Position numbers and translations under genes: made by a program
Notes under the pieces: generated by a model
Seen by the model: the letters and a program-made list of their open reading frames with translations, nothing else
Databases searched by the model: none
Told to the model about the DNA's origin: nothing
In this document: positions 17,899-58,700 of the stretch, piece by piece
How the letters are laid out: each line of letters begins with the position of its first letter
Position numbering within the stretch: position 1 is the first letter of the stretch
DNA from: Mytilus edulis
Taxonomy: Eukaryota
Direction of reading: 5' to 3'
Length of the DNA: 64,000 bases
Assembly: GCF_963676685.1 (NCBI RefSeq)
Contig: NC_092352.1
Coordinates: 56,110,001 to 56,174,000, forward strand

Positions 17899-20033
17899 AG
17901 TCTTAGTAAGGAAAAATGATAAGAGTCTAAGATTGTGTGTAGATTTTAAACAGCTTAACAAGAAGTCTCGTCTTGATGTCTATGCTATTCCCCGTATAGA
18001 GGAAATACTCGACTGTCTTGCAGGAAACAAGTATTTTTCTACCGTCGATACGAAATCGGGGAGTCACTAAGTAGAGATTTACGAACTGCATAAAAAGCGC
18101 ACAGCTTTTACTGTAGGCCCTTTAGGAGTTTTCGAATTTTGTAGGAAGCCGTTTGGATTATCCAACTCACCTGCAACTTATCAGCGTTTAATGCACGATT
18201 GCTTAGGAGACTTGCACTTGAAAATATGTTGCATATTTATGGATGATATCATTATATTTTCTAGGACATTTGAAGAACATATGGAGAGGTTTAAACTTGG
18301 TTTTGACATAATTAGAGATACTTGTTTGGAAATGGCACCAACTAAATGTACCTTCTGAAAACCAAAGGTAAAGTATGTTGGTCATATAGTCTCAGAGGAA
18401 GGAGTTAAAACTGACCCCGATAAAATGGAGATAATTAAGAATTGGCCAACACCGAAAACTCCAGAGGAAATCAGGCAATTTATTGGTATTGCGGGATACT
18501 ACCGTAGATTTATGCGAAAATTCAGTCAGATTTCTTGACCTTAAATCGAATTAATGCTGACACCAGCTAAAAAGAACAAAAAGAAAATTCAAACCAAAAA
18601 ATCATGGACAGGAAATTGCATTTGGAAAATTAAAAGAACTTCTATCAACAGCACCAATTTTAGGATATGCCGATTATACAAAACCTTTTTTTAAATTACA
18701 CACAGAAGCTAGTATATCAGGATTATGTACTGTATTATATGAACATCATGAAGTACCCAACAGAGTTATACCATATGCAAGCTGTGGACTATCGAAATTT
18801 GAAAAGAACTATCCGGCACACAAATTAGAATTCTTAGCACTCAAATGGTCAGTTTGTGACAAATTTCACAGTTATCTTTATGGCCAATCAAATTATAAAC
18901 CGATAATAATCCACTCATCTATGCGTTAACACCTGCCAACTTAGATGCCACAGGACATAGGTGGATAGCTGCTCTTCCGTTATATGACTTTGACATTACA
19001 CACCGTCCTGGCAAAAACAACTCTGATGCAGATGGTTTATCAAATATACAGAATAGAATCTATCAAAGCTATATGTGGATTGATTTCTACACCATTATGG
19101 AAACTCTATCAATATCACTAAAAGAAGTTGATGAAACAACAATAGATACTAAACATCAAATTTACAACGACATAAATTGGGTAAGTATACAACATCAGGA
19201 TAAAGAGCTTCAACTATAGAAATGGTAAGGTATTACATATTTCAGATAAAACCGTTACACCTCCACCGAAACCAAAACTTAGATTAAAACCGATGTAATC
19301 ACCACCGAAACTTAAATCAGTCATAGTTACAGACACTTCAGACTTAACTACTGAATCTTCATCAGATGATGAAAATTAGTTTGTACCTACAATAAAAACA
19401 GACAATGCTCCATTAAGCACTGAGGATACTGCTGTGTTACAGGAAGAAGAAATTGAACAATAGGATACAACAGAATCAGTTGGGGACGTCCAATCTGATA
19501 TTCAGGAAATCAGAGATGATTCTGAATTAGGAAGCGCTTCTGGTATTGATGAATCTGATCATGAATTATTGAATGAAGATGATACCGTTCAATCTGATAA
19601 TGATAGTGATACGTTAGATGATTTGGTCCTTCGTCCGATACCTTCACCCAGAAGGTCGCGTCGTGCTAGGAGAGAACCAAGGTGGCTAAGGTCTGGAGAT
19701 TTTGTTATGAAAAGTGCAGTGATTTGTGATTGGAAAGCATAATTGAATTTATGGCTTCTGCAATTAAGGATGGAACTCTATCTGGATTAGAAATAGAAGC
19801 TGGAAAAGCTTTAATAGACATTATTTTGAAATTATCAAAGAAATTCAGTGAGATTATTCCATTCAGTTATTGAGATATGTGTATTATCTTTTATATGTTT
19901 GATAGTTAATTTCAATAATTGTTAGTAAGAAGTACTGAGAGCCAGAACTTCACATGTGTATTATATATTGTATTTTTGAAGAAGAAAAAATGACTGCAAT
20001 GACGGGGACGTCATTTCTAAATGCAAGGGAGAT

Positions 20034-38513: not shown

Positions 38514-41041
38514 CTCAAAATATGTCAAATCAAACTGTATTATTTTAATAAGAAATCAAAAACCTAAAACTGAAGAAAAAAAATGCATGCCTGAGTTTTT
38601 AAATTTTGTATATTTGTCCACTACTTTCAAACATCATATTTGTATATTGTTTCTATTGATTGTAGACTGTAGTTTTTATTTCATATATCATATGCATAAA
38701 AATAACTGTTTCAGGAAAGGTGAGCAGTATAAAGTCAAATTATTTAATATTTATGATAGATTGTTATGTTTAACCAAATACGGTTATGTAAACGCATTAT
38801 ATGTGATATGTAATGTATATAGTGTACATGTATGTGTTAAAGTTAACGTAAAGGTAATTACTCTTTATGAAGTTAAAAGTCTATTGTTTGGAAACAAAAT
38901 TAAAGATCATCACGTGTCATTAAACGTTACATCAAAAGTAAACAAAATTACCTTTTCAAATTTCTACAATGAGTATAAAAATAGCATCAATAAACGTAAA
39001 TGGATTAAGAAATGTTAATAAATGACATTAGTTTTTAATTGGATTGTTTCACAAAACATAGATCTTGTATGTTTACAAGAAACACATTGTACACAGAACC
39101 AAAATTGGCTTTGGAGCAAAGAATGGAAAGAATACGGGAGTGGTAAAAGTTTCTGGAATTGTGGTACAAACGAATCAAGAGGTGTGGGAATTTTATTAAA
39201 GAAAGATTTTACGTTTAGCTTTGATGTCTCAATGATAGATGATAAAAGTAGAATGCAAATTGGTGAATTTAAAACTAACACTGCGGTTTATCATATATTT
39301 AATTTGTATAGCCCAAATAAGGGTTCTGAAAGGAAACATTTTTTTGAAAACCAGAAAAACTTTTAAAATGAATTGTATTTAGATGATGGCACAGATCATT
39401 AAATTATTTTTTTAGGAGATTTTAATTGTGCGATAGATAGAAAACTAGATAGGTCCAATTTACACCAAAAGGATGATACAGGCTTAAACGAGTTAAAAAG
39501 TCTTCTATTGAATTTTGATTTAGATGATATATGGCGATCTAAATTTCCAACAAATAGACGGTATAGTTTTCAAAGAGGTAATTCAAAATCACGAATAGAT
39601 TATATTTTTGTACGAAATCCCTTAGCTGCAAAATTTTAAACACACGTATAATCACATTTCCATTTAGTGATCATGACATAGTTACTTCAAAAATAAAATT
39701 AGATGATATTGAAAGAGGACCGGGAATGTGGATCATGAATCTAAATACAATTAAGACTGATGAATTTTCAAATGCATTTAAAATGTTTTGGGAAAATTGG
39801 GTTAAAAGCAAAAACTGATTCAATAGCATTCAAGAGTGGTGGGATGTTACAAAATCAAAAATTAAATTTTTGACCATGGAAATTAGTCAAAAACTAAAAC
39901 GTTTATCAAAACAAAATGTCATTGCTTTAGACAGCTTGAAAAATTGAAACTTCAATTAAACGAATCAAATGAATCATGTGACAAAAGTTTAGAATTAGAA
40001 AATAAAATTAAGGAATATTATACTAAAAAAACAGTTTCCGCAAAAATTAGATCACGAACTAAATGGGCCGAAGACGGGGAGAAGTCGACAAAATACTTTT
40101 TTAATTTAGAAAAGAAAAATGGGCAGAATAAATTATGGCAACGTGTAAAAACAGAAAACGGTGAGTATAAATGTGACATTGATTCAATCTTAAATGAACA
40201 AGTAAAATTTTATACTAAAGTTTTTGCCACGGAAGGATGGGACAAAACAGCGGGCGAACAACTTTGTCAATTTATGGTAGACAAGGTAAGTAAGGAAGAT
40301 CAAGAAATGATAGATAGAGATATAAATATCTCTGAAGTAGAAAAGGTACTAAAATTACTTAAACAAAACAAATCACCTGGCGAAGATGGTATAATATCAG
40401 AATTTTATGTTTTATACTGGGATATAATTAAAGACGATTTCTTTAACTTACTACAAGAAATATTTAATGATACTATATTGAGTAACTCTCAACATAAGGG
40501 GGTCTTAACCTTATAACATAAAGGAGGGGAAAGGGAAAATATAAAAAATTGGAGACCACTAACTTTACTTAATTGTGATTATAAAATTATTGCAAAGATT
40601 TTATCTGAAAGACTTAAAATAGTATTGCCTAAAATTATTCATACCAATCAGAAGGGGTTTATTAAAGGTGGGAATATAAGCGAGGCTAACCGAATGATTC
40701 AGGACATTATATAATATATTGACAACGAAGTTGAAGAAGGAATAATATTATTTTTGGATCAACAAAAAGCGTTTGATAGGGTTGAATGGGAATGGATAGA
40801 TTTTGTATTGGAGAAAATTGAATTTGGTGGGAAATTTAGAGCATGGATAAAGATGCTATTATACAATGCTACTACGTGTATCAAAACTAATGGGTTTGTA
40901 TCAAGATACTTTTCGATTACTCGCTCCGCTAGGCAAGGGTGTCCAATAGCGCCTCTCTTTTATATCATACAAGCTAAACCCATGGCATGTGTTTTGTTAT
41001 AATAAAACACCCATGCAACCACGCATCCCATATTGCTGATA

Positions 41042-41222
41042 GGACCCGACACAAATATCAATTTCGTGTTTCGGTAGTTAAGCTTGGGATGGTCATTTTA
41101 AGATGCATTATTTGAATATAATCAAATATGAAAATTATTCATGTTTATATTGATATATTTATATTTTAATTCTTCTTCAATATATCTAGTTATTATGACA
41201 GATCTACCATCATCAGGGGTCC
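41042..41222 (-). ncRNA. Type I hammerhead ribozyme with ~126-nt loop II
   Basis: Minus strand GGACCC-CUGAUGA-U-GGUAG-[126 nt]-CUACC-GAAAC-ACGAAAU-UGAU-AUUUGU-GUC^GGGUCC. All core residues present and stems I, II and III pair. Predicted cut between 41048 and 41047. Confidence 0.8.
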
Positions 41223-41227
41223 AACTG

Positions 41228-43171
41228 TCAATTTAATGTTAAAGTCTTTAACTTTGATCTACTAAGCATATCTCCAATACTTTTATGTTTGCTATACGCA
41301 ACTATTGGTGCTGTATTGAATATTTGTACAAAGTCTTCGTCGAACTGTAATAAATGCCAGTGTTTCATTATACGTTTCTTTATTTTAAGTATAATATATG
41401 GATTATATTTAGTTATTAAAACTAACGGAATACTTTGCTTCTCTTTAGATTTGTTTTGTTGTAATAAATCAGTACGGTCAATTGATAAAGCATCAGTAAT
41501 ACTATCATCTATTTCCACGTTATCATAACCCCTATCTAATAATTTCACTTTAAAATTAGTTAGATTGTTTATTAATTTGTTATGGTCACTTGTATTTCTA
41601 ATTTGTCGTATTGCTTCACCTTTTATAAATCATCTGAATACATGCTGTGAGTGACAGCTATTTCTGTGCAGAAACAGATAAGAATTTGTTTCTTTAAAAT
41701 GTATTTCGAGGTCAAGAATGCCATATGTTGTAAATCTTTGACCTTTAATTACATCAACATCCAAGAACGACATGTTATCGTTTTTGATTTCATAGGTAAA
41801 CTTTAATAAAGGGTTATAATCATTTACTAGACGAAAAAAAATCTTTAATTTCATCTGATGTTCCATCATTTATTATGAATCCATCGTCTCTATATCTGCC
41901 ATGATAGAATATTTTGTCTTTATATTGAAATGCAGAAATAATTTGATTCATTGTTTCAAACATAAGTATGTCACAGATTTCCGGTGAAGGAACTGCACCA
42001 ATTGCCGTACCTATTACTTGTTTGTAAATTTTCCCATCAAATTCAAATACATTGTTTTCTAAAATAATTCTCAACAAATGTATTAATACATTGACTGGCG
42101 GAGCATTGCCTTTGAAGTTTGATTTGTCAAAACTGTCATAGGCTCGTTCAACCGCACTCAATAACGCTTCTTGAGGTAGATTAGTAAACATCTGTGTTAT
42201 ATCATATGAAACCAAAAGGCTGTTTGCTATAGGTTTTAATTTCTCAATGATATTAATGAACGATGTAGTATCTTTTATATATGTAGACTGATTTTGAACC
42301 ATTGGTATAAGAAAATAGTCAACGTAATGACCTATAAGTTCAGTTACAGAACCACACTGTGATATAACTGGTCTACCAGGTGGAATTATATTTAATCCAT
42401 CATGTATTTGTTTAAACGTCTCTGTTTCAAGACGGTGAATTTTTGGGAGAATATAAATTCTCCCTAATCGTGCATCTCTTAATTTTTGACCATTTGTTAA
42501 AAATTTAAATGATATTTTTTCGATTATGCCTTGGTCGTATAATGATTTAATATACTCAATGACCTGGATTTTCAGTTCTGCCATGTTAAATGAATTTAAT
42601 TGGCAGTAATGTTAAGTATTTAGTTGTCTTGTGACTTCTGTTATGTAGTCTAGCCTGTCTAAAATAACACAATTTGAATTTTTATTTGCCTTTTTTATTA
42701 CTATTGTTTCATCATTTTTCAAATTGCGTAGCGCTATTCTTTCGCCCTTAGTAAGATTGTTTTTTACATTTCTTTCTATTGGTAGAAAAGACAATTCTAG
42801 CTTGGTTAAATCTATGTAATTTTCCAACGTATGGCACGTAGAGGCAGGTTTATATCCTGTATTGCTACGAAATGGATGAAGGTCAGTTTTTTCTTGACTG
42901 AACATATACCGACTTCGTAATTTTCTAGCAAATTCATTGTAGTCTTTTAGTATAGACATTTTTGCATTTTTGCTTGATGGCGTTGGTATAAATTTTCAGC
43001 CTTTCGCCAACAGGATATATTCCTGATTTGATAATCTGCGTTTTGATATATTAATTACATGCTTTTTTGCATGTGCAGTTCTTTGCTGCATATTGTATTT
43101 ATTCCGTTCTTTTTTTTATTGTAGAATCGGAATTTTTGCTTTTTAGCATTTCTATTAAAACGACGTGCCAT
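41228..43171 (-). pseudogene. PLE reverse transcriptase, ~645 aa, RT only
   Basis: VINIS..LS.QEYILLAKGLKFIPTP, IVIKKANKNS..VILDR.DY, YILPKIH, GRPVIS, SYDITQMFTN, YKQVIGTAIGA, GRYRDDGF, FLDV, FIKGEAIR, AYSKHKSIGDMLSRSKL then stop. Two nonsense codons (42612-42614, 41630-41632) and homopolymer frameshifts. Confidence 0.88.
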
Positions 43172-43450
43172 TTTTGAGTTCACATTGGGTGATTCTCTTA
43201 GCTACGTGCCTTTGTTGAGCTCACATTGGGTGGCTGAAGAATTTTTAGGTTCACACATGTTATAAACCTTGAAAGAAGATCCGCCCAAATGCACGTGGGT
43301 TGATAGGGGTGACATTAAAATAGAAGGATTAAAATTACCAGGATGGGGGGGAGGAGAGATTATAGAAACCAAATTATGCATGTTTGCAGATGACACCCAG
43401 GTATTTAATAAAAATGAAAAATCTGTAGAAAATAATTTTAAAATTTTGTC

Positions 43451-44173
43451 ATATCCAGAAATCAACGCCACTTTGCTTATTTGAATATTATACTAAAGAA
43501 ATCGGATACGGGTCACGGAAATTACATTAAAATGATAGGAAATTTTGAAAAAATGTCTGTTTTAATTTAAATTTAAGTGATAGACAGGTTGCCGGGGCAG
43601 AAAATGAATATACACAACAATATACATCATTGAAAGGAAACATAATGACTGTTGTTGCAAAAATATAGGTTCCTGAGCTATTTTAAAAATCGAAGCGAGA
43701 GGCTTTTAACATTGCAGTGTAAAATACAGACTAAAATGGCTGAAACGTCAAATTTGCAAACTTCGTGTTGAAAATTGGCTTACAAGGTCATTACAAAACC
43801 AGGTTGCCGGGGTGAAATTTGAAACTTGAATTTCCAAAGAATACGCAAGTCCAAACCTTGTATGTGTAGTCGTTGAACTATAGGTTCCCACGTAAAGTTA
43901 AAATTTCACTATTTCAAGAAGAAAAAACTCACGAAAGCACGAAAAAATTCACTAAATTCGCGTTCATTGTTTTGATTTTGACCGCCTGACAACTTTACGG
44001 AAATATCAAAGTAATTGTAAATAAGGACTCTGTGACGGGCAACTTATAATATCCGTGTTTTAAAGATTTTAATGATATCAAGCCAGTCCAGTTCAATCTT
44101 CTATCACGTGGTACAATTCTCATTTACATATTATGAATATTAATTAGCAAAACCACTACTTATTTCTGGCTAT
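43451..44173. mobile_element. Non-autonomous TIR DNA transposon (possibly Academ-like) inserted in the LINE RT
   Basis: 3-bp TSD GTC (43448-43450 / 44174-44176); imperfect ~40-bp TIRs ATA(T/G)CCAGAAAT...TTTGCT.ATT. Removing it restores FKILSLYEKASG. Confidence 0.8.
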
Positions 44174-53400: not shown

Positions 53401-55349
53401 CCAAATTTTGGTTTTCGTTTGTTTTGTATTCATAAAAAAGTAAAGGAAATTAATAAAGTCGTCCCCTCGAACTCCGGTTAAAAATACATCCGCATACAAT
53501 CCAAAATGTGACAATTTTACCATGTTTTCAAACTCCGTTTCAAAAGAAAATCACGACTCGTTCTCGAATATAAAACTTATCGGAATAACTCCAACAAAAT
53601 ATTAGACAATAAAATACATATTGTTTATTGATATATTTTAATTGTTGACACTATAAATATGATAGAATAGATCAGTAGTTTTTGTTGATTTTTAATCAGA
53701 TACATGTAGTATATGTACATCGGAAAATAAAAAATTACAATTAATTAATATAGATATATGGCCGTTAATTACCATTTTGTTTAATGTTTCGAAAGATCGA
53801 ATGTACTTTCATACAGGAACAATACATTGATGGGAGGAATTCGAACCATTGAAAATTTATCTATCACCTGTTGACATTTGTGGATCTTCCTGTTTGTCAA
53901 CACGGATACGTGATACAATGGTTATCCGATTCCAACGACTAGTCAATGCACTTTTATTTTTCAGTTTGTAGATTTTGTAAAGCAGCTGTTGCATGTTAAC
54001 AATAAAGTTATGTTGTAATAGGCCTGCTACGCAGTAAACTCTCATATGGAATGATGAAATCCTTTGCAGCCTCATATGGTAATACATCAAGATGAGATCT
54101 ACCTATTGTCCCAATAAAGTCATGATATTTTTAAAAACAACGAGGGGGGCCATGTTGACAAAAATCAATAAATTGGATAGAAGTGGTAGGAGGGCGTGCC
54201 AAAAAAAATGCTGGAGGAAAAAAAACGTTAGAAAGATCAAAAAGGTCTTTCCTCGCGTAGAGGAAAGACCTTAAAAAATATGTCTATTTTCTACGGGAAC
54301 TCGGACTTCATATCTTTCTTTTATGTGTTGTGTGCGTATTTTGTTTGAACTGTTTGTTAGGTTACTAACTACAGTACTTCTGGTCAAAAATATGTAGAGG
54401 TGTGGGTATGCTGACATCAACAAAAATTGTAAGCCTTGTAAAATAGTTCTTGTTCATAGCCTAAATAAAATTTTGTTAATATATTTAATTTCCCAGTAGG
54501 CGCTCTCCATAACAACATTTTTTGATAAAATTTTAGAAAGCAACAACATTCTAACAGTAAACCGATTAGTGGAGTATCATTTATGTATTCGATACTCGAG
54601 TACTCGTTGACATCCCTAATAAATACATACCTTTTCTGCGTAATTTGTTTGAGTTTTTCTCAAACCTGTTGCAAATTACAACTTCCTTGATGATTTAATC
54701 AATTGTAAATACATTTTTAGCTACTTAATCACTAGTGTGGGCAAAAACATGTGTTGTCAGATAGATTTGTAAATTGTAAAGCCAGCAGGCCCATATGTCT
54801 CCAAAATATAAAATTAGAATTTAGCCAATTTGGACACTGCTTTACATTGAAATACTCCTACAAAAATATCTGGAAGTCCTACATATTTACACTGAGCGCA
54901 AACTCTCAGGGTATGAAATGTTGTTCGACAAATATGTTGTGTTTTGTCATGCTCAAACTCGCAGGACCTACATGAAACTAAAATTAAATTTTGGAATTGA
55001 AAAATAAAATTTTATTGAATCTTTGAAATATGGATGTAATGTAAGAAATAGTGTGTCAGTGAACATTTTTGATAAGATACTAAAATTGTTATGATTATAT
55101 TAAGTGTCTGTTTAGCCTTATGTGTTTCGTACAATAAACACGATTGTAATGAGAATGAAAATACGGATTTTTTTGTGTTTTTAAAATTTACTGTTACAAA
55201 ATGGTAGAATTTATTATAAGTTAAGGAATGTATCTCCCTCATGAAAAGCTCTGATTTCTTACACAGATTTGGCTATACTTTTTGGACCTTTTGGATTATA
55301 GCTCTTCATCATTTATATAAGCTTTGGATTTCAAATATTTTGGCCACGA

Positions 55350-55393
55350 GCATCACTGAAGAGACATGTATTGTCGAAATAAGTTTCTGGTGC
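55350..55393 (+). ncRNA. Minimal type I hammerhead, stem III mutated
   Basis: GCATCA-CTGAAGA-GACA..TGTC-GAAAT-AAGT-TTC-TGGTGC. Confidence 0.6.
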
Positions 55394-55698
55394 AGAAAAA
55401 ATGGTACCGTTAATGTTATTACTACCACTGGGTCGATGCCTCTGCTAGTGGACTGTAAGTCCCCGAGGGTATCACCAGCCCAGTAGCCAGTACTTCGGTA
55501 CTGGCATGAAAATACGGATTTTTTGTGTTTTTAAAATTTACTGTTTGAATGATAGAAACTATTATCAATTAAAGAATGTATCTCCCTCATGCAAAGTTAT
55601 GATTTCTTTCACGGATTTGGCTATACTTTTTGGACCTTTTGGATTATAGCTCTTCATCATTTATAAAAGCTTTGGATTTCAAATTTTTTGGCCACGAC

Positions 55699-55740
55699 CA
55701 TCACTGAAGAGACATGTATTGTCGAAATGCGCATCTGGTG
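55699..55740 (+). ncRNA. Minimal type I hammerhead ribozyme, intact
   Basis: CAUCA-CUGAAGA-GACA-UGUAU-UGUC-GAAAU-GCGC-AUC^UGGUG; the palindromic GCGC loop III is typical of dimer-active minimal hammerheads. Confidence 0.85.
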
Positions 55741-58700
55741 CAGAAAAAATGGTACCGTTAATGTTATTGTATACTAATCATTAGCAATGAATCTCATCGG
55801 TAGACATTTTGTTTAGTTTTTCTTTTCATCATGCTATAGTAATATTTAAAATAAAATGAAGAAATTTTTGTCAATTATGTTGAAATTTGGATTTGATGCA
55901 AGAACTGGGTGTATGCATTTGCTATGACCAAATTTTGGTTTTCGTTTGTTTTGCATTCATAAAAAAGTAAAGGAAATTTATAAAGTCATCCCCTCCAACT
56001 CCGGAAAAAAATACATCCGCATAAAATCCAAAATGTGACAATTTTACCATGTTTTAAAACTCCGTTTTAGAAGAAAATCACGACTCTGTCTCGAATATAA
56101 AACTTATCAGATAAACTACAGCAAAATATTCGACAATAAAATACATATTGTTTATTGATATATTTTAATTGTTGACACTATAAATATGAAAGAATAGCTC
56201 AGTAGTTTTTAATCATATACATGTTGTATATGTACATCGGAAAATGAAAAATAACAATTAATCAATATTAATATAGATACATATGGTCGTTAATTACTAT
56301 TCTGTTTAATCTTTCGACAGATCGAATGTACTTTCATACAGGAACAATACGTTGATTGGAGGAATTCGAACCATTAAAAATTTATATGTCACCTGTTGAC
56401 ATTCGTAGATCTTCCTGTTTGTCAACACGGATACATGATACAATGGTTATCCGATTCCAACGACTAGTCAAGGCGCAAGTTTGAGCATGACAAAACACAA
56501 CATATTTGTAGAACCACATTTCATACCCTGAGTGTTTGTGCTCAGTATTAATATGTAGGACTTTCGGAAATTTTTGTAGACATATTTCAATGTAAAACAG
56601 TGTCCAAATTGGCCAAATTTTTAATTTCAGATTTTGGAGACATATGGGCCTTCTGGCTTTATAATTTACAAATCTATTAGACAACACATGTTTGTGCCCA
56701 CTCTAGTGATTAAGAAACTAAAATTGTTTTACAATTGATTAAGTCATCAAGGAAGTTGTAATTTGCAACAGGTTTAAAAAAAAAACTAAAACAAATTACG
56801 CAAATAAGGTATGTATTTATTAGGGATGTCAACGAGTACTCGAGTATCGCTCGGTAGTACCGAGTATCGAATACATAAATGATACTCGACTAATCGGTTT
56901 ACTGTTAGAATGTTGTTGCTTTCTTAAACTTTATAAAAAAAATGTTGTTATTGAGAGCGCCTACTGGGAAATTAAATATATTAACAAAATTTTATTCAGG
57001 CTATGAACAAGAACTATTTTACAAGGCTTACAATTTTTGTTGATGTCAGCATACCCACACCTCTACATATTTTTGACCAGAAGTACTGTAGTTAGTAACC
57101 TAACAAAAAGTTCAATCAAAATACACACACAACACAAAAAGAAAGAAATGACGTCTGAGTTCCCGTGGAAAATAGACATGTTTTTTAAGGTCTTTCCTCT
57201 ACGCGAGGAAAGACCTTATTGTTCTTCTAACATTTTTTTTTTCTTTTTTTTTTCTTCCAGCATTTTTTTTGGCACGCTCTCCTACCATTTCTATTGGAGT
57301 TATCAATACCAAATTTGAATTATCAATAGAACACATCATGAAGTTTTACAAGATGAACTTTTTTTAGGATTTCATCACCCCCTTTAGAAGTAAAATCCCT
57401 TTTATTGATTGTTTTCAACATTGCCCCCTCGTTGTTTTAAAGATATCATGACTTTATTAGGACAATAGGTAGATCTCATCATGATGTATTATCATATGAG
57501 GTTGCAAGGTTTTCATCATCCCCTATGAGAGTTTACTGCATAGCAAATCTATTACAACATATCTTTTTTGTTAAAATGCAACAGCTGCTTTACAAAATCT
57601 ATAAACTGATAAATAATGTGCATGACATACATGAAACTAATATTAAATTTTGGAATTGAAAAATAAAGTTTTATTGAATCTTTGGAATATGGATGTAATG
57701 TTAAAAATAGTGTGTCAGTGAAACTTTATGATAAGATACTAAAATTGTAATGAATATATTAAGTGTCTGTTTGGCCTTATGTGTTTTGTACAATTTACAC
57801 GATTGTATACTAATGATAAGCACTGAAACTCATCAGTAGACGTTTTGTGTAGTCTTCTTTTCATCATGCTATAGTAATATTTATAATTAAAAAGAAGAAG
57901 TTTTGGTCAATTATGTTGAAATTTGGATTTGAAGCAAGAACTGAATGTACGCTATTGCTATGACCAAATTTTGGTTTTCGTTTGTTTTGCATTCATAAAA
58001 AAGTAAAGGAAATTAATAAAGTCGTCCCCTCTAACACCGGACAGAAATACATCCGCCGCATAAAATCCAAAATGTGACAATTTTACCATGTTTACAAACT
58101 CCGTTTTAGAAGAAGACTCTGTCTCGAATATAAAATTTATCAGAATAACTCAAGCAATAGAGACAATAAAATACATATTATTTATAGATATATTTTAATT
58201 GTTGACATTATAAATATGATATAATAGCTCAGTAGTTATTGTTGATTTTTAATCATATACATGTAGTATATGTACATCGGAAAATGAAAAATAACAATTA
58301 ATCAATATAGATATATGGCCGTTAATTACCATTTTGTTTAATGTTTCGACAGATCAAATGTACTTTCATACAGGAACAATACATTGATTGGAGGAATTCG
58401 AACCATTGAAAATGTATCTGTCACCTGTTGAAATTCGTGGATCTTCCTGTTTGTCAATACGGATACATGATACAATGGTTATCCTATTCCAACGACAAGT
58501 CAATGCACTTTTATTTATCAGTTTATAGATTTTATAAATCAGCTGTTGCATATTACCAATAAAGATATGTTGTAACAGATCTGATATTCAGTAAACGATG
58601 AAAAACGTATTGACTGCGTATGGAAGGATTGCGAAAATTTAAAATGTCACTGCTTGACAGCAAATTGTACCACTGAATGCCTCTTTGGATATTTTGATGA

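Follow-up and report, generated by a model that had tools for sequence, protein, structure and literature searches.

How a Penelope-like element (PLE) whose reverse transcriptase (RT) is not followed by an endonuclease (EN) could spread inside chromosomes is the question raised by a minus-strand insertion in the blue mussel Mytilus edulis. The insertion lies in a stretch of 64,000 nucleotides (nt) (RefSeq assembly GCF_963676685.1, contig NC_092352.1, positions 56,110,001 to 56,174,000; hereafter the window, in which positions are counted from its first base) and interrupts a long interspersed nuclear element (LINE). An earlier note had proposed that it represents a distinct EN-less PLE lineage coupled to a self-cleaving RNA and possibly linked to the small repeats known as retrozymes. 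Taken together, our results probably describe a 5'-truncated dead copy of an EN-less, Neptune-adjacent PLE family that carries a hammerhead ribozyme in its 3' untranslated region (UTR) and primes without a nuclease of its own.

Absence of the endonuclease in family A and its relatives

Lack of the EN is a property of the whole family, here called family A, and of a large clade, and not a deletion in the window copy. More than 15 sister copies in the same genome (95-97% identity) retain intact open reading frames (ORFs) of 646-649 amino acids, all of which stop at ..HKSIGDMLSRSKLK(TLTLN/NVT), directly after the ..HKSIGDMLSRSKL motif. Because these sister ORFs never read through into a GIY-YIG domain and the unit holds no EN-coding frame, the lack at the family level is real: the 610 non-coding nt of the unit contain stops in every frame, and tblastn searches of the unit with 39 PLE endonuclease domains returned only noise. 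In the window itself, the RT frame stops directly after ..AYSKHKSIGDMLSRSKL.., where relatives go on into a Cys-rich linker and GIY-YIG, as had been noticed before. The degenerate, 5'-truncated state of the window copy might suggest that it is merely a deleted or decayed relic of an ordinary EN-bearing PLE; however, this is hardly credible given the last residue shared by the intact sisters, a unit of just 2559 nt without EN remnant, and the identical ORF end in a second mussel family (family B), in the metagenome contig L060 and in about 100 database relatives, and for the family it is ruled out.

By homology, the family A protein is a PLE RT, because distant homologues of the whole RT (31-34% identity over residues ~20-645) extend at the C-terminus by a further 130-165 residues, which Pfam scores as GIY-YIG. 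Its best database match is a 647-residue "uncharacterized protein [Mytilus edulis]" with 99% identity; the further full-length relatives, of ~640-690 residues, come, where named, from Mytilus, Pinctada, Saccostrea and Argopecten. Alignment A1 shows no variation at residues D162 and K163 of the IVIKKA-DK motif, an N-terminal motif of the ADK(N/G) type, or in the catalytic RDD motif. Precomputed Pfam annotation of the relatives gave DUF8422 and HTH_animal, the protein atlas returned generic PLE clusters only, and a sequence search of the PDB found no match.

In an RT tree of 96 rows (IQ-TREE, LG+G4, quick search; midpoint rooting, with no outgroup and no named reference elements), 48 EN-less representatives, including family A and a second Mytilus family, formed one clade with a Shimodaira-Hasegawa-like approximate likelihood-ratio (SH-aLRT) support of 99. 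The sister group is EN-bearing and has linkers of the Neptune type (CX4CxxC/CX4CxCC), while family A itself has no linker. The EN-less clade is apparently monophyletic and placed beside Neptune-like GIY-YIG PLEs, and we infer a secondary EN loss within Neptune-like PLEs from the sister group's linker motif together with the midpoint rooting. The distinct lineage proposed earlier stands as a well-supported clade but not as a new class of architecture, since EN-less families within Neptune have been published (PMC8557442).

The mussel genome also contains at least 10 further EN-less families (38-47% identity, open frames of 650-692 residues) and dozens of intact EN-bearing PLE ORFs (787-980 residues) that span the GIY-YIG region. 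In family B (L043-L058), a 667-residue ORF ends ..RRHKNLKDIVTSATLNN. Two head-to-head arrays of this family were observed at G000:C7:17920518-17956506, with six minus-strand units followed by about three plus-strand units and intact ORFs that are 99% identical, which indicates, from sequence identity, very recent activity. The larger EN-less units, those of family B (4262 nt) and L060 (4251 nt), have a second ORF of 266 and 232 residues, respectively, whose C-terminus is RG/RGG-rich. Located after the hammerhead and before the RT ORF (L048:3904-4704; L060:697-1395), it is ORF1-like and is absent from family A. Neither a Pfam domain nor any mutual similarity was detectable in the two proteins.

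A search of the genome's own DNA (1.37 Gb; the window lies on C9), in which only natural copies were compared, yielded at least 67 matches to family A. Most are 94-97% identical; their 5' starts vary, and their 3' end always corresponds to window position 40992. The full unit comprises a 380-nt 5' UTR, an ORF of 649 residues and a 229-nt 3' UTR. Nearly all copies that reach the first base of the window copy carry a conserved 244-nt segment directly upstream, and the window copy is for this reason regarded as 5'-truncated, without the first 244 nt of the unit. Family A is a young Mytilus PLE family.

The window copy and the intact copy L002 share 97.4% identity. In alignment with an intact sister, the RT ORF of the window copy shows three premature stops (at 42998, 42614 and 41632), two frameshifts (+2 at ~43116 and +1 at ~41841) and two in-frame indels (-12 at ~42403 and +3 at ~41394). 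Instead of the one ORF of ~645 residues described earlier, this dead and 5'-truncated copy holds four ORF pieces, and it has no functional importance of its own. Around its start codon, a 29-nt direct repeat (window 43163-43232, minus strand; 90% identical, 41 nt apart) places the ATG in the second repeat copy. Protein alignments to family B extend upstream of this start through a TAG, which suggests a shifted ORF start. The idea that the insertion ends form the hairpin of a circularly permuted monomer was ruled out, as one end is the point of 5' truncation and the other the canonical 3' end.

A predicted hammerhead ribozyme behind the reverse transcriptase

The last ~230 nt of the element, described earlier as AT-rich and structured, hold a predicted hammerhead (Table 1) that starts 5 nt past the stop codon. 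All three core segments (CUGAUGA, GAAA and GUC) are present, and the three helices are paired throughout. In family B, the hammerhead is of type III, lies ~100 nt past the stop codon and has a 13-bp open helix III with loops of 50 and 39 nt, and in L060 it is of type I and has a loop 3 of 80 nt; there, the minimum-free-energy (MFE) fold coincides with the hammerhead. The core, the extra U and an ACAC/GUGU base of helix III are shared by the three, whose proteins are 40-42% identical, and all helix pairs are kept among them with two-sided compensatory changes at no fewer than 8 positions. At the score of family A, the descriptor would hit shuffled sequence about 0.03 times per 64 kb. Two other hammerhead-like matches in the window, at 43135-43416 (plus strand) and 19169-19365 (minus strand), scored within the chance range and were rejected. 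Substitution rates in the hammerhead and the loop within a family are uninformative, as the copies decay neutrally.

Genomic copies also provide indirect evidence that the predicted hammerhead is cleaved in vivo, because two independent loci begin exactly at the predicted cut base: the L020 insertion on C7 and two mini-units of 56-74 nt in L010 on C8 start at the G that follows GUC. With ~50 observed 5' ends over 2559 positions, chance falls far short of explaining why two independent loci should share a single base specified in advance. The self-cleaving RNA suspected earlier is thus supported by a complete core, covarying helices and copies that start at the predicted cut site. Among more distant EN-less loci (32-37% amino acid identity), L062:5345-5400, L063:5854-5915, L066:3806-3865 and L081:3284-3345 share the sequence ..GGGAGUCGYGYAGGYCUGYCA.. 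directly past the stop codon, in place of a hammerhead; possibly, this motif is bound by the RT or forms some other structured RNA.

Table 1. Positions in the window of the element, its predicted ribozyme and its target
Feature	Position	Strand	Basis or detail
5'-truncated inactivated family A copy (unit positions 245-2559)	40992..43307	-	Own-genome DNA search, BLAST against natural full unit
Rest of 5' UTR, 136 nt, with 29-nt direct repeat overlapping the start codon	43172..43307	-	
Broken RT ORF	41228..43171	-	ATG 43171-43169, TGA 41230-41228; weak Pfam RVT_1 match
Predicted type I hammerhead ribozyme	41042..41222	-	Manual and scripted parsing
Helix I, 6 bp, GGACCC/GGGUCC	41222-41217 / 41047-41042	-	
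CUGAUGA core, then extra U	41216-41210, 41209	-	Extra U between A9 and helix II
Helix II, 5 bp, GGUAG/CUACC	41208-41204 / 41077-41073	-	Around a 126-nt AU-rich loop
GAAA	41072-41069	-	
Helix III hairpin, 7 bp	41069-41049	-	
Predicted cut	3' of C 41048	-	GUC
56-nt tail 3' of cleavage site, ending ..UAUAACAAAA	40992..41047	-	Constant 3' end of insertions (>30 junctions)
Host LINE RT ORF, upstream part (target)	39944..40991	+	Pfam RVT_1 match, E 8e-8
Host LINE, downstream continuation (..GDIKIEGLKLPG..MFADD..)	43304..43449	+	LINE paralogs resume at 43304
4-nt microhomology at 5' junction, common to element and LINE target	43304..43307	.	Element match extends to 43307, LINE paralogs continue from 43304

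Insertion without an own nuclease

The bounds of the insertion, drawn from the own-genome copies and the LINE paralogs, give a length of 2316 nt (43307..40992), which corrects the 40991-43302 proposed before; its 3' base is shared by more than 60 other copies. Its placement within a LINE ORF was confirmed: the plus-strand RT ORF is split in two, and the LINE paralogs, which represent empty sites, align up to 40991 and again from 43304. Because each of these paralogs leaves exactly 4 bases of its own unmatched, 4 target bases were deleted at the insertion; there is no target-site duplication (TSD), and the 5' junction has 4 nt of microhomology. Among the solitary copies checked, TSDs were absent in 8 of 8, and neither (TTAGGG)n nor (CCCTAA)n telomeric repeats were found in the window or in 58 loci; on both points the earlier note is borne out. 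The copies sit at internal chromosome coordinates, tens of Mb from the ends, and their 3' junctions show no evident AT-rich or microsatellite preference. Just past the insertion, the same LINE holds a repeat of ~350 bp (43450-43798) with at least 40 genomic copies of 96-98% identity, probably a short interspersed nuclear element or an element resembling a miniature inverted-repeat transposable element.

Every insertion has ..UAUAACAAA(A) at its 3' end, 56 nt past the cleavage site and followed by unrelated flanks; this end is inferred to mark an internal start of reverse transcription. In L022, L025, L017 and L019, this ..AACAAAA end is followed directly by (A)n or (CAAAAA)n-like runs, which might have arisen where synthesis is initiated, through slippage or repeated copying. 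A comparable process has been described for PAc, a Poseidon PLE of Anolis, in which reverse transcription is initiated internally at an AC-rich site lacking homology with the target (PMC11167929).

Head-to-tail arrays of family A were observed at C12:50.11 Mb, C8:63.78 Mb and C8:78.28 Mb, with a period of 2559-2566 nt and one hammerhead per unit; they open with a 5'-truncated unit and close at the canonical 3' end. In addition, partial copies lie upstream of some full units, with their first base at unit position 2256, 2294 or 2504, and inverted neighbour copies occur in L007, L008 and L025. Family A thus displays the partial-tandem or pseudo-long-terminal-repeat (pseudo-LTR) layout, inverted copies and 5' truncation by which PLEs are recognized, and tandem, pseudo-LTR and inverted layouts together with hammerheads are general PLE features (PMC8557442). 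Copies of family A also adjoin or nest in each other, as is typical of PLEs, and one of them, that of L015, has landed in a family B element, within its hammerhead region (5' flank of the copy, L015:3751-3790, minus orientation).

These structures suggest a possible order of events. Transcription would run across the unit boundaries of tandem or partial-tandem copies, and the hammerhead, most likely acting as a 5'-processing ribozyme, would cut after GUC and fix where the RNA begins, 56 nt upstream of the unit boundary, for which the two loci that begin there provide indirect evidence. By analogy with PAc, cDNA synthesis may start at the fixed internal AC-rich ..AACAAAA, 56 nt 3' of an uncut hammerhead, on a 3'-OH that the RT most likely does not make itself and that would be provided by pre-existing nicks, breaks or replication ends. 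Joining of the cDNA 5' end via microhomology accounts for the 5'-truncated, TSD-less insertions and small target deletions observed, and read-through templates or template switching may have produced the observed pseudo-LTRs and tandem arrays. In L020, one full unit follows the 56 nt that lie 3' of the cut site; its template appears to have been cut at the upstream hammerhead and read through at the downstream one, which a linear, 5'-processed RNA fits better than a circle.

The priming 3'-OH might alternatively be gained parasitically, with the EN-less RT using nicks made in trans by the GIY-YIG of co-resident Neptune-like, Naiad or Poseidon elements, and with family A perhaps borrowing an ORF1-like protein as well. 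The many intact EN-bearing ORFs in the same genome, the in vitro dimerization of a PLE protein (PMC11167929) and the absence from family A of the RG-rich ORF found in family B and L060 would all be in keeping with such dependence. However, the junctions, with their missing TSDs, small target deletion and lack of AT-rich or microsatellite bias, and the persistence of a deep and diversified clade without an EN argue in the other direction; we regard this as a possible but less probable course, and pre-existing DNA ends as somewhat more likely than nicks in trans. A different origin, as a relocated member of the telomeric EN-less clades Athena and Coprina, would fit the missing EN and the hammerhead near the 3' end, both of which occur in those clades (PMC8557442); nevertheless, it is very improbable in view of the absence of telomeric repeats, the location of copies far inside chromosomes, the absence of an N-terminal extension and the Neptune-type linker of the nearest EN-bearing relatives.

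The arrays also invite the interpretation that the element is an autonomous retrozyme, in which two hammerhead cuts free a 2559-nt monomer that a host RNA ligase circularizes and that is then reverse transcribed by rolling circle into arrays, as the coding counterpart and possibly the mobilizer of mussel retrozymes. Exact head-to-tail arrays with one hammerhead per unit (also in family B on C7, with a period of 4262 nt), their truncated beginnings and canonical ends, and the metagenome contigs L059 and L060, which close on themselves as one unit, are compatible with such a cycle, and the published retrozyme model names PLEs as the source of RT (PMC7229834). On the other side, tandem and partial-tandem copies are generic to PLEs, whether or not the hammerhead is canonical (PMC8557442), the L020 template indicates linear RNA, and the mini-units of L010 resemble run-off on linear, 5'-cleaved RNA. 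Moreover, a classical mussel non-LTR retrozyme does lie in the window (55157-55770; two head-to-tail units of ~350 nt, both bearing a compact hammerhead of type I, ..CUGAAGAG..GAAA..), and its comparison with the PLE yielded nothing significant (best matches of 10-24 nt, E>=0.6), so that the link suggested earlier to the repeat at 55155 found no footing. Retrozymes are small, non-coding, non-autonomous repeats, and the family A unit is 2559 nt long and encodes an RT of 649 residues. All 24 RNA runs consisted of assembled contigs; in the 4 of them compared with family A, the element is present, although DNA carry-over is possible, and neither molecule ends nor a cut-site signal or circular joint appeared. 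We therefore consider the circular route unlikely for family A. Slightly more doubtful still is its extension to the bivalve EN-less clade as a whole, according to which hammerhead-bounded RNAs that encode the RT, and in some members an RG-rich ORF1, circularize, integrate nuclease-free and possibly mobilize retrozymes. Both the circular-RNA cycle and the mobilization of retrozymes are ideas already published (PMC7229834; 10.64898/2026.07.22.740005).

Several observations weigh against our preferred explanation, that of an EN-less, Neptune-adjacent PLE with a 5'-processing hammerhead and nuclease-free priming. Rfam models detect none of these hammerheads (whole window at the gathering threshold, the region at E<=10, and ten related loci), plausibly because the long loops, of 39-126 nt, defeat them. 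The MFE fold predicted for family A does not contain helix II and has a z-score of only -1.6, and the deeper EN-less loci L061-L066 and L081 show no clear hammerhead past the stop codon. Relatedness to Neptune and secondary loss would follow from the linker of the sister group and the midpoint rooting of a tree without outgroup or named references. In addition, the many intact EN-bearing ORFs could supply the priming 3'-OH in trans.

Relation to known elements and significance

Neptune PLEs, which have a C-terminal GIY-YIG and a CX2-5CxxC linker, belong to the closest known systems: their RT is homologous from end to end, with the N-terminal motifs and a thumb ending of the ..KxLxDxLVRAKL type, and they share a single main ORF with a hammerhead downstream, pseudo-LTR, tandem and inverted copies, and 5' truncation. 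The mussel element differs in that its ORF stops exactly where the linker and EN would start, its unit is only 2.56 kb, its hammerhead is full-size with a loop 2 of 119-126 nt and the extra U, and it has neither TSDs nor a microsatellite target. EN-less families are known to arise within EN-bearing clades such as Neptune, with MjPLE01 as an example (Craig et al., 2021; PMC8557442), and EN loss within Neptune or Chlamys has been associated with "alternative means of securing 3'-OH" (PMC8557442). As it is described there, MjPLE01 of the kuruma shrimp (Koyama et al., 2013, cited in PMC8557442) is a precedent for an intrachromosomal EN-less PLE next to or within an EN-bearing clade; by that description it is a single family, whereas in mussels many young families make up a large and diversified clade. 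Athena and Coprina share the absence of an EN, a hammerhead near the 3' end and reliance on a 3'-OH that is not element-made, but the mussel element has no reverse-complement telomeric repeats, telomeric location or extended N-terminus.

Apart from Naiad and most Chlamys, every PLE clade has hammerheads (PMC8557442). PAc (Frangieh et al., 2024; PMC11167929) likewise has a hammerhead in a repeated UTR, yet it nicks DNA with its own GIY-YIG, and no in vivo reads were found at its hammerhead cut site, in contrast to the two mussel genomic loci that start at theirs. The animal non-LTR retrozymes (Cervera and de la Pena, 2020; PMC7229834) share head-to-tail repeats, one hammerhead per unit and an expected unit-length RNA, but measure 170-400 nt, are non-coding and have compact canonical type I hammerheads, unlike the RT-encoding mussel unit of 2.56 kb.

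In R2, RTE and L1Tc elements, a self-cleaving RNA resembling the hepatitis delta virus ribozyme frees the 5' end of the element from an upstream co-transcript. The likeness of the mussel ribozyme to these 5'-processing ribozymes has two limits: the mussel class is a hammerhead, and it is not sited in a unique 5' UTR but follows the preceding unit's ORF.

The architecture described here is already known, as EN-less PLE families, hammerheads and tandem layouts have all been published, and it is a notable variant rather than a new class. New are the size and youth of the bivalve EN-less clade, the copies that start at the cut site, the members with two ORFs, and the full-size, long-looped hammerheads of both topologies with a conserved extra U. 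In the textbook view, EN-less PLEs are telomeric and spread within chromosomes requires GIY-YIG; a whole diversified clade in mussels departs from that view. As many young families with intact ORFs coexist intrachromosomally in one mussel genome without a nuclease of their own, the source of the priming 3'-OH becomes directly testable. The clade further shows that full-size hammerheads with long loops, of type I as well as type III, exist among PLEs and escape both Rfam models and standard descriptors, and the copies that start at the cut site would provide genomic evidence that PLE hammerheads are cut in vivo, a point still open for canonical PLEs.

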